Assembly: GCA_004431415.1 (NCBI GenBank)
Contig: QPMI01000022.1
Location: forward strand, 248,001 to 312,000
Direction: 5' to 3'
Origin: Cyanophora paradoxa CCMP329
Taxonomy: Eukaryota > Plantae > Glaucophyta
Length of the DNA: 64,000 bases
In this document: one piece after another, positions 976-4,426 of the stretch
Layout of the letters: each line of letters starts with the position of its first letter
Position numbering within the stretch: position 1 is the stretch's first letter
The notes under the pieces: generated by a model
What the model was told of the DNA's origin: nothing
Database searches by the model: none
What the model saw: the letters and a program-made list of their open reading frames with translations, nothing else
Program-made: the position numbers and the translations under genes

Positions 976-3900
976 ATGGCGTTCGCTGGGGTTCCCGTCG
1001 TCTCCGCTTCCTCGCATGCAGTAGCTGGTCTCATTCAGGTGCGCGTCACTCCAACGGATCGCCGCAAAAAGCCGGACGCGGATAGATCGTAATGAGGGAT
1101 GTGCACGGGCGGCCGAGTATCGGCCAGCCAACGAACGCCCCGCCTCCGATAAGTTCATTAGCCTCGATCTGCCGGCTTTGAAGCTCCCCTGACGCCGCCG
1201 GGCTTCGACAGGCCCAGCCTTCGTTCGTGGGCCTCGCCCCGGCGTCGAAGATCGCCCGAATCTCGCCCCGTTCAAGCAGCAGCGATGTGAACGCAAAGCT
1301 CAGGAGCAGATGCTTTGCGCATCAGCCCCGGCGGACGTTCAGCTGCGTCGCCCAGAGCACAGCCGCGGCGACGAAGCCCGCTCACGTCGACGGCCCCATC
1401 GGGCGCGATGACTACGCCGAGGTCGGTCCTTAAGCGCGCGCTCGCCCGAGCTCTTGGAGGCGGACGGGGGCTCAGCGGCCGCGCAGGCGCCGCGGTTCGA
1501 CTATGTGATCGTGGGCGGAGGCGCCGCAGGCTGCGTTATGGTGCGCGGGAGCTGGGCGCGGGCCCCGTCAGGTCCCGCCCCCCTTAGCTACCCCTCGAGC
1601 CTGACGAGATCCCTTAGGCGAACCGGCTCTCCGAGGACTCCTCCAAGTCGGTGCTGCTGATCGAGGCGGGCGCCCCCAAGGGCAACCTGTACGTCGAGCT
1701 GCCCATTGGATTCCCTTTGCTCTTCGGCGGGGAGTTCGACTGGGCGTACCGCTGCGAGCCGGAGCCCCAGCTCAACGGGAAGCAGGTGCCGTAGTCTCTG
1801 CCCGCCCCGGCCCCGTCCCCACCCCCGCCCTGTCCTGGCGTACTTGGACTTCGAAGTGATCGCGATTGGGTTACAGGTGTATTTGCCCCGTGGCAAGCTC
1901 CTCGGAGGGTCCCACGCGATCAGGTCCGCGGTCTCATCCGAGCCATCTGAGCCCCCCCCCCCCCCCCATCTGAGCCGGCGCCGCCCCCAGCGTCATGCTG
2001 TACCAGCGGGGCGACCGCAAGGACTACGAGGCGTGGGAGGCGGCCGGCTGCGAGGGCTGGGGCCCCGAGGGCGTGTTCCCCTACTTCAAGCGCTCCGAGG
2101 GCAACGCCCGCGGCGACTCCGAATGGTACGTTCCGACCACGTCATAATTGCCTCTTGATTGGAGATTTGACGATTGCTTTCCCGCAGGCACTCGTCCGAG
2201 GGCCCTCTCTCCGTCGTCGATGCTCAGGTGAGCTGCGACCGCGGCCCGCGCCCCGTACCCCCCATCTAACGCGTGTACCCCGCAGCTGAACGTGACGACG
2301 CGCGCGTTCCTCGAGTCCTGCAAGCAGGCCCGCCCCGCCCCGCCCCCCTCCCCCCCCTTCGTCCGCGTACCCCGCTTACGGGGATACGCGCAGCTCGGGC
2401 TGCCGAAGAACCCGGACTTCAATGAGGGCTGGAACCAGCTGGGGTACGGGCCCTTCCAAGTCACGCAGAAGCGCGGCCGCCGCGCGACGCCGGCCACCTG
2501 TGCGCCCTCTACCCCCCGCCTTCCCCTGTACCCCCCATGGTCCAACGCCGTACCCCAGCGTACCTGGAGCCGATCAAGGACGTGCGCAAGAACCTCACAA
2601 TCATCACCGGTGGGCGCTGGCGCCCTTTCTTCATTTTGGCCCCGGCACGCTAGCGAAGCGGCCTAACCGCCGGCCAGGCGCGCACGTGCACCGCCTCGTT
2701 TTCGAAGGCCGCCGCTGCGTGGGGGTACAGTACAGCACCAACAACACCCTCCGCACCGTCCGCTCGAACGAGGACGTGCGCCGTACCCCCCCAAAAGCCA
2801 CTTCTTCCCGCGCTTCTTTGTCTGAGGGCCGGGCAGGTCTGCCTGGCGGCCGGCTCGCTGGCGACGCCGCAGCTGCTCATGCTCTCGGGCGTCGGCCCGG
2901 CCGAGCACCTCCGCGAGAAGAACGTACCCGTCGTGGCCGGTGCGCGCGTACCTCCTTCTTCTACTTCCCGCGCTTTTTTGGATTTTCGGGTGCTGCAGAT
3001 CTGCCGGGGGTGGGGGAGAACCTGCAGGATCACCCGACCGTTCTCCTCTCGTGGAAGACCGCTGCCGGCCCATACACCTCCAAGGAGCCGTGCGCCTTCT
3101 TCCCCCCCTCCCCTTAGGGGGGTACGGCCAGTTCATCTGATATTTCTTCGTTCGCCGGGCCAGGTTCAATCCGAAGAACTGGCTGGACTACCTCCTCCTG
3201 GGCCAGGGCAACCTGCGCACCTCCGTTTGCGAGGCCGGCGGCTTCTTCAAGGTTCGATACCGTACCCCGCCTGTTCTCCCCCCCCCCCCCCCCCCCCAAC
3301 TTTGTTCGCCGACGGCCGAGCTCTCCGCCCGCCCGCAGTCCCGCCCGGACCTCGAGTCGGCCGACTTCCAGGTGCGAACGAAATTCGTAACGAACGATTC
3401 GATTTGCCTCTGAGCTCAGTACCCCCCCCCCCGCAGCTCCGCTTCGTTCCCTTCAAGAGCGACTACGACGACCCGTACGCTTCGTTCACCGACTACGCGC
3501 GCCTCGCCGACGGCTGTACGTACCCCTCTTTCTGTTTCTTGGCAGCCGTTCGACTCGAACTTTTCCCCCTCAGCCGGCCCCTCGCTCCGCAAGAGCAAGA
3601 ACGTCGGCCCCGGTCCGCGCTCCCCCCCCCCCCCCCCCCCCCCCCCTTCCCCGGGCCCTTCCCTTTCTTACACAGCGGCGCAGGGTTCACGATGCAGGCG
3701 GTTGCGGTGCGCTCCGAGTCGCGCGGGAGCGTCCGGCTGCGGAGCAACGACCCCTTCGACCGGCCCGTCGTCAAGGTAAAGAAAGAGAGAGAGGAGAAAG
3801 AAAGGATGGGAGAAAGGAGCTGAGAGGGGTACCGCGCGCGCAGAGCGGGTACCTCACGCACGAGGGCGACATGGCGGCGCTGAAGGCGGGCGTGAAGCTC

Positions 3901-4426
3901 ATCCGGCAGCTCGCCGCCGCCGCGCCCATGGCCCCGTTCAAGGGCGAGGAGCTCTGGCCTGGTGACTCCTAACTAACTCTAACTCTTAATTCTAACTAAC
4001 TCTAACTAACTCTATTATTAAACTCAGGCCCCGAGAGCCAGAGCGAGGCGGACCTCGAGGCGTACATCAAGCGCTCGGTGCACACGGCCAACGCCCTCGT
4101 CGGGACCGCCAAGATGGGGCCCGCCTCGGACCCCTCCGCCGTCGTCGACCCCAAGACCTTGAAGGCAGCTATACCCCCCCTCCCCCCGCTTCATCCCCCC
4201 TCCCTGCCCCCGGGGTACGACGAGGGCCCGGCAGGTGCACGGGATCGAGGGCCTGCGGGTGGTGGACTCGAGCCTGTTCCCCAAGATCCCCGGAGGCCAG
4301 ACGGGCGCACCCGCCATGATGACCGCCGAGAAGGCGCGCCCTCTTCCTTTTGAATTTATTACTGCTTTCTTACTTCCTCCTCAGGCCGCGGACATCATCA
4401 AGGCGTCCGTAGCCAGCCGGGCGTGA
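976..4426 (+). CDS. Plastid-targeted GMC oxidoreductase-family flavoprotein, fatty acid photodecarboxylase (FAP)-like
   Basis: Multi-exon model. Exon 1 (976-1038) is [21 protein letters not shown], continuing as a Ser/Arg/Ala-rich transit peptide. FAD motif [22 protein letters not shown]; [20 protein letters not shown]; LMLSGVGP; [13 protein letters not shown]; TSVCEAGGF; LRFVP; GFTMQ; [16 protein letters not shown]; [41 protein letters not shown] ends at 4426. Confidence 0.9.

Follow-up and report, generated by a model that had tools for sequence, protein, structure and literature searches.

A predicted fatty acid photodecarboxylase of red-algal type in the glaucophyte Cyanophora paradoxa

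In fatty acid photodecarboxylases (FAPs), light-excited FAD oxidizes a carboxylate held by an arginine, CO2 is lost, and the remaining alkyl radical is reduced and protonated. Whether glaucophytes have such an enzyme, and if so of what type and age, is the question raised by a locus of Cyanophora paradoxa. A survey of the family found no FAP in this alga and no GMC protein in glaucophytes, for which only one genome was available, and suggested that FAPs may have originated after the glaucophyte split (bioRxiv 10.1101/2020.06.23.166330). The DNA analysed here, a 64,000-nucleotide stretch from C. paradoxa CCMP329 (the window), carries a gene that a first-pass annotation described as encoding a plastid-targeted flavoprotein, either a divergent FAP or a member of an uncharacterized FAP-sister clade, possibly acting on a different substrate.

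Gene structure and active-site residues

The gene extends on the forward strand from an ATG at position 976 to a TGA at 4426 and comprises 22 exons separated by 21 introns (Table 1), 18 with GT-AG and three with GC-AG borders. The first intron is 173 nucleotides long and the other 20 measure 51–91 nucleotides, and the joined exons give one open frame for a 644-residue GMC flavoprotein. Fifteen of the 21 splice joints are seen directly in contigs from three probable RNA runs belonging to different studies, none of these 15 appears in a DNA-like run, and the remaining six are fixed or fitted by contig pieces together with record offsets. The gene is real, with spliced-contig support. An in-frame stop lies upstream at 940 and no ATG occurs between 940 and 976, so 976 is the earliest possible start. 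An alternative acceptor at 3675 was ruled out by the contig offsets.

Table 1 Coordinates of the FAP gene and of features of its predicted product in the window
Feature	Position	Strand	Basis
FAP gene, exons 1–11	976-1038, 1212-1421, 1487-1540, 1618-1785, 1877-1923, 1991-2125, 2188-2227, 2286-2327, 2394-2499, 2559-2609, 2678-2775	+	
FAP gene, exons 12–22	2837-2939, 2999-3089, 3164-3251, 3339-3371, 3437-3515, 3574-3612, 3684-3775, 3844-3961, 4028-4164, 4235-4333, 4385-4426	+	
N-terminal extension, aa 1–91 (exons 1–2), with predicted cyanelle-type transit peptide	976..1421	+	Composition; criteria of PMC4510345
GMC_oxred_N region, aa 95–385, with GxGxxG FAD-binding motif	1496..3036	+	Pfam PF00732, E 1.4e-47
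Flavin-contacting loop GGSHAISVML, aa 175–184, split by intron 5	1904..2000	+	Alignment
Segment D383–C425, 43 aa, spanning the CvFAP I398 region at the pocket entrance	3028..3230	+	
Cys425 (CvFAP C432)	3228..3230	+	Alignment
Arg445 (CvFAP R451, carboxylate anchor and proton donor in CvFAP)	3440..3442	+	Alignment
Phe460 (at the CvFAP Y466 position)	3485..3487	+	Alignment
Gln487 (CvFAP Q486)	3695..3697	+	Alignment
H571-T-A-N574-A575 (CvFAP H572..N575-A576); A575 in place of the ordinary-GMC catalytic His	4081..4095	+	
Q620-T-G622 (CvFAP Q620..G622); G622 in place of the second GMC catalytic Asn/His	4298..4306	+	

The gene model is identical to database protein P0001, which was found by a search with a stop-free frame of the window and corresponds to EP00741_Cyanophora_paradoxa_P005819 and tig00000113_g5640.t1. 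The gene is from a glaucophyte, as the first-pass annotation had thought probable. The genome-paper supplement lists the g5640 transcript at 644 aa, with Chondrus crispus XP_005714951.1, a ‘probable dehydrogenase’, as its best hit (PMC6704402).

The flanking loci were also inspected. A divergent neighbour lies on the reverse strand at window positions 1–749, with an ATG at 560, about 415 bp from the FAP start. One RNA contig joins 591 to 749 (a 5′ intron of the neighbour) and continues into the 5′ end of the FAP gene, so the 5′ regions of the two genes abut or overlap. One stretch of this neighbour resembles an ACT-type motif, and the exon tested gave no Pfam match. Downstream, a convergent reverse-strand gene at about 5100–6540 matches V-ATPase subunit d (PF01992). 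At 4464, one RNA contig departs from the reference and has 175 letters that do not match it, possibly marking an alternative 3′ end or splice.

Residue equivalences to the Chlorella variabilis enzyme (CvFAP) were taken from sequence alignment, with wild-type Cys432 read from P0167. All six FAP residues named in the first-pass annotation are present: C425, R445, Q487, H571, N574 and Q620 align with CvFAP C432, R451, Q486, H572, N575 and Q620, and F460 occupies the Y466 position. The codons of the six residues begin at 3228, 3440, 3695, 4081, 4090 and 4298, respectively, and that of F460 at 3485, each exactly where the annotation had put it. The database cluster representative named CvFAP, P0156, has Ser at 432 and is thus the C432S variant.

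The complete six-residue set occurs in about 110 of 394 aligned GMC proteins, algal wherever they are named, and is absent from the other 282, so its co-occurrence is not a product of chance. The C. paradoxa protein also matches 9 of 9 columns diagnostic of FAPs against bacterial GMCs, and 104 of the 112 columns conserved across 58 other FAPs, the mismatches being mostly conservative. Among 198 putative FAPs examined previously, C432 and R451 were strictly conserved (bioRxiv 10.1101/2020.06.23.166330).

These features bear on whether the protein could be a conventional GMC oxidase or dehydrogenase that works without light, for instance a choline dehydrogenase. Both GMC Pfam domains (PF00732 and PF05199) score above cut-off, and bacterial GMCs reach 45% identity and give higher BLAST bits than CvFAP. 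The GMC fold (Z 42–48) and FAD-binding motifs are likewise common to choline dehydrogenase BetA, choline oxidase and other GMCs. However, those enzymes retain both catalytic residues, His and Asn/His, and have no C432/R451/Q486/H572/N575/Q620 set, whereas Ala575 and Gly622 replace the catalytic residues in the C. paradoxa protein. The Ala575 column holds His in 279 of 281 outgroup residues, and the metagenome relatives (80 of 80) are ordinary GMCs with the catalytic His. Moreover, the protein reaches neither the NCBIfam betA cut-off (447 versus 732 bits) nor that of PRK02106 (515 versus 605 bits), known FAPs likewise fall below the choline dehydrogenase cut-offs, and the protein is nested in the FAP clade (see below). 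An ordinary GMC activity is hardly credible on this evidence, in agreement with the first-pass view that the product is unlikely to be a choline dehydrogenase.

A predicted structural model (pLDDT 86, pTM 0.90) has CvFAP as its best fold match (Z 49.3, rmsd 1.9 Å, 530 residues), and CvFAP is also the best sequence match in the PDB (E 1e-115). Choline oxidase and an alcohol oxidase follow at Z 48.0–48.3, within about 1 of CvFAP, so the fold identifies the GMC superfamily only.

Position within the FAP clade

Maximum-likelihood trees were built from 96 rows and, with a careful search under LG+C20+F+G4, from 48 rows. Near-duplicates, fragments, fusions above 1000 aa and most bacterial hits were omitted, and 17–36 bacterial-type GMCs provided the root. 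Both trees give the topology (bacterial GMCs, ((glaucophytes, reds), (greens + secondary-plastid algae))). Support in the 48-row tree is 100/99 for glaucophytes, 100/99 for glaucophytes plus reds, 99/97 for reds and 100/99 for the FAP clade; when motif and active-site columns are removed, glaucophytes plus reds and the FAP clade still receive 96/97 and 98/93, respectively. The first-pass annotation had proposed a GMC phylogeny for placing the protein, and this one groups it with FAPs, as sister to the red-algal FAPs. Grouping of the glaucophytes with the green/secondary-plastid clade is rejected by the AU test (p = 0.002), as is, under LG+G4 on a quick tree, nesting with mesophilic reds (p = 0.008) or with Cyanidiophyceae (p = 0.005). 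Reds being monophyletic (99/97), the C. paradoxa protein is not nested among red-algal sequences, an arrangement that would indicate transfer from crown reds.

The trees also address the proposal of a sister family that diverged earlier than any known FAP and perhaps catalyses a different or ancestral reaction. A loop with the length seen in the bacterial outgroup (see below) would suit such a family, as would the agreement of the C. paradoxa protein with reds in only 12 of 28 red-specific columns. However, a position of glaucophytes outside all known FAPs is rejected (AU test under LG+C20+F+G4, p = 0.004), the catalytic set is complete, and H178, S181, F449, S451, P456 and Y457 are derived states held in common with reds and lacking in green FAPs and the outgroup. 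We regard an early-branching family as very improbable, and the uncharacterized FAP-sister clade of the first-pass annotation gives way to a place inside the FAP clade. Tested enzymes bracket this place across the FAP root, with Chondrus P0534 on one side and those of Chlorella and Nannochloropsis on the other. The full residue set, the GMC fold and this position all support the original description of a FAP-type flavoprotein. By alignment and phylogeny, the predicted product is a FAP of red-algal type, and neither a sister family nor a new photochemistry or photoenzyme class.

The nearest relative is an orthologue from a second glaucophyte, Gloeochaete wittrockiana (EP00276_P020215, MMETSP1089; 56% identity, clade support 100/99), which has the same catalytic set, Phe at 466 and 43-aa loop, and differs in having Val at the CvFAP L173 position and four fewer residues between R451 and Q486. 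Red-algal proteins follow at 42–50% identity, from Porphyridium, Gracilariopsis, Chondrus, Porphyra, Eucheuma, Galdieria partita, Cyanidium and Cyanidioschyzon. In these proteins the loop reads HAISVM or nearly so, positions 432–433 are C-E, Phe and Pro stand at G455 and G462, respectively, and Leu is the usual residue at Y466. In public databases, the red-algal FAP orthologues P0399, P0419, P0429 and P0527 are labelled ‘choline dehydrogenase’, ‘alcohol dehydrogenase [acceptor]’ or ‘probable dehydrogenase’.

The Chondrus crispus FAP (XP_005714951.1) belongs to the sister clade (100/99) and is 48% identical to the C. paradoxa protein. The two share GGSHAISVML, C-E at 432–433, the LRF-PF strand, the P-Y-x-S helix start, a non-Tyr residue at 466, HTANA and Q620. 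The C. paradoxa protein differs in having Phe rather than Leu at 466, a D383–C425 segment of 43 rather than 52 aa, an R445–Q487 segment of 43 rather than 38 aa, and a glaucophyte host. When expressed in E. coli, the Chondrus enzyme is active, makes hydrocarbons/alkenes and prefers 18:1 (bioRxiv 10.1101/2020.06.23.166330), and the N-terminal string of P0534 exactly matches the expressed construct. From Galdieria, only G. partita and one Galdieria-like sequence were recovered, with 13 of 16 N-terminal residues matching the tested G. sulphuraria enzyme; the tested sequence itself is absent from the set, and Chondrus therefore provides the direct connection to a red-algal enzyme that has been tested.

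Two further sequences were noted in the green part of the tree. P0441, the FAP of the streptophyte alga Chlorokybus, lies at the base of the green clade and is already listed in PMC13326499, and P0164, a long-branched FAP-type protein (MMETSP/JGI), takes a basal position in the group of green and secondary-plastid algae.

The first-pass annotation had pointed to the loop GGSHAISVML and to Phe at the Y466 position as signs of divergence. Both features are indeed present, but neither marks divergence, as both are typical of red-algal FAPs including Chondrus XP_005714951.1 (the sequence P0534), which has the identical loop and Leu at 466. The HAISVM loop and the C-E, LRF-PF-x-S and P-Y motifs are common to Chondrus, Galdieria partita, Cyanidioschyzon and Porphyra. 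Phe460 departs from a tyrosine that is sometimes listed as conserved, but Tyr466 is not family-wide: among 57 other FAP-type proteins this column holds Tyr in 29 and Phe in 15, with Leu in most red-algal FAPs. That red-algal enzymes lack Tyr466 was noted in 2024 (PMC11664916, which prints ‘lysine’ where the present alignments give Leu). Simulations and mutants identify Y466 as a tunnel residue (PMC13397541, PMC8233396), it is reported to play no direct part in proton or H-atom transfer (PMC13397541), and a Y466A variant is active (PMC8233396).

Thus, the appearance of divergence arose only from using the Chlorella enzyme as the sole comparison. The protein shares with CvFAP (PDB 5NCC, 6YRU, 6ZH7) residues C432, R451, Q486, H572, N575, A576, Q620 and G622, at 40% identity over 579 columns, and differs by Ser for N170, His for S167, Phe for Y466, G455 and I130, Pro for G462, Glu for D433 and a shortened I398 region. 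Ser181 sits at the N170 position, which is Asn in CvFAP and ordinary GMCs and in 278 of 282 outgroup rows. The suggestion of a different substrate finds no support in the loop and Y466 differences, since both are shared with red-algal FAPs, among them the alkene-making Chondrus enzyme.

As a separate observation, red-algal and glaucophyte FAPs have Ser for the near-invariant Asn under the flavin, together with His three residues upstream. No structure of this Ser-type subtype is present among the PDB hits of the sequence search.

Distribution and age

In the literature searched, which included few subscription papers, the bioRxiv survey was the only source relevant to a photodecarboxylase in Cyanophora or other glaucophytes, and no later correction of the reported absence was found. 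What is new here is that glaucophytes carry a predicted FAP, against that published absence; all three primary-plastid algal lineages then have one. The presence of an intact spliced orthologue in two glaucophyte genera removes the survey's argument for an origin after the split.

The first-pass annotation had held that a glaucophyte copy would bear on whether FAP chemistry dates to primary endosymbiosis, and the confirmed copy does bear on the age of FAP. The occurrence in two genera, the position outside the red crown group and a gene with 21 short introns favour an origin in the archaeplastid ancestor, and FAP was most likely inherited from the common ancestor of primary-plastid algae. A grouping of glaucophytes with reds is not the usual species tree, which calls for caution about vertical inheritance; the grouping may reflect an ancient exchange of the gene among stem lineages, or the noise of a one-gene tree.

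No cyanobacterial source of FAP was seen here or in the survey (bioRxiv 10.1101/2020.06.23.166330), so a date at primary endosymbiosis concerns the time of origin and does not mean descent from the endosymbiont. Two FAP peptide patterns detected no FAP-type locus in bacterial and archaeal genomes, which is a weak negative. Likewise, a length- and candidate-limited search found no further glaucophyte genera with the gene, a result that says little.

Entrance loop, targeting and proposed chemistry

The D383–C425 segment is 43 aa long in both glaucophytes, 47–55 aa in 58 other FAPs and 41–49 aa in the bacterial GMC outgroup. From this alignment, a tunnel-entrance loop about nine residues shorter is a predicted trait specific to glaucophytes. 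The short loop may have arisen by secondary deletion, in keeping with the tree, or may have been retained from an ancestor, which would agree with a branching earlier than the tree shows. The substrate range could also be altered, and this segment is the chief support for rival readings.

One of these is a FAP-clade photoenzyme whose substrate has shifted from C16–C18 acids, for example to C20 polyunsaturated acids or bulkier carboxylates, through the shorter entrance loop and a relined tunnel. The shortening, found in both glaucophytes, spans CvFAP I398, where single mutations shift chain-length preference (PMC8233396). FAP homologues vary in specificity (bioRxiv 10.1101/2020.06.23.166330), and the alga contains much 20:4 and 20:5 but little C18. 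However, the other tunnel changes (G455F, A457S, G462P, T465S and non-Tyr 466) all occur in the Chondrus enzyme, which decarboxylates 18:1, and 16:0 is abundant in the alga. Model confidence in the entrance loop is below 50, so no loop shape can be read from the model. We consider such a shift improbable. A broader proposal, doubtful though somewhat less so, is that glaucophyte FAPs form a distinct early branch whose short entrance loop confers a new substrate range (for example, efficient C20 polyunsaturated conversion), and that the Ser-for-Asn enzymes of glaucophytes and reds differ in flavin geometry or photostability. By far the most probable reading is that the gene encodes a C. paradoxa fatty acid photodecarboxylase of red-algal type that works on ordinary long-chain fatty acids.

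The N-terminus of the predicted precursor has Phe at position 3 and no acidic residue before position 46, and residues 1–75 are 17% Ser and 20% Ala. Phe3 and the Ser/Ala-rich composition fit criteria for Cyanophora transit peptides (PMC4510345), which suggests cyanelle targeting. Such a precursor would be imported into the cyanelle and processed. By analogy with the family, the enzyme would then bind FAD and accept a free fatty acid in its tunnel, the carboxylate being anchored by Arg445. Blue light would excite FAD, an electron would be taken from the carboxylate and CO2 would leave. The alkyl radical would be quenched by back electron transfer and a proton from Arg445 or water, with Cys425 assisting, and the product would be a Cn-1 alkane or alkene.

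Three fatty acids predominate in Cyanophora, namely 16:0, 20:4 and 20:5; pentadecane from 16:0 would therefore most likely be the product, with C19 polyenes from 20:4 and 20:5 also possible. Because fatty acid synthesis in the Cyanophora plastid is almost nil (PMC11714747), free fatty acid would have to arrive via import or lipid turnover. If a plastid-targeted FAP has been kept under these conditions, its role would be independent of fatty acid synthesis in that organelle, and Cyanophora, with its predicted plastid-targeted enzyme, offers a test case for FAP function. For biocatalysis, the protein represents a naturally occurring variant that has a relined tunnel and shares about 40% identity with CvFAP.
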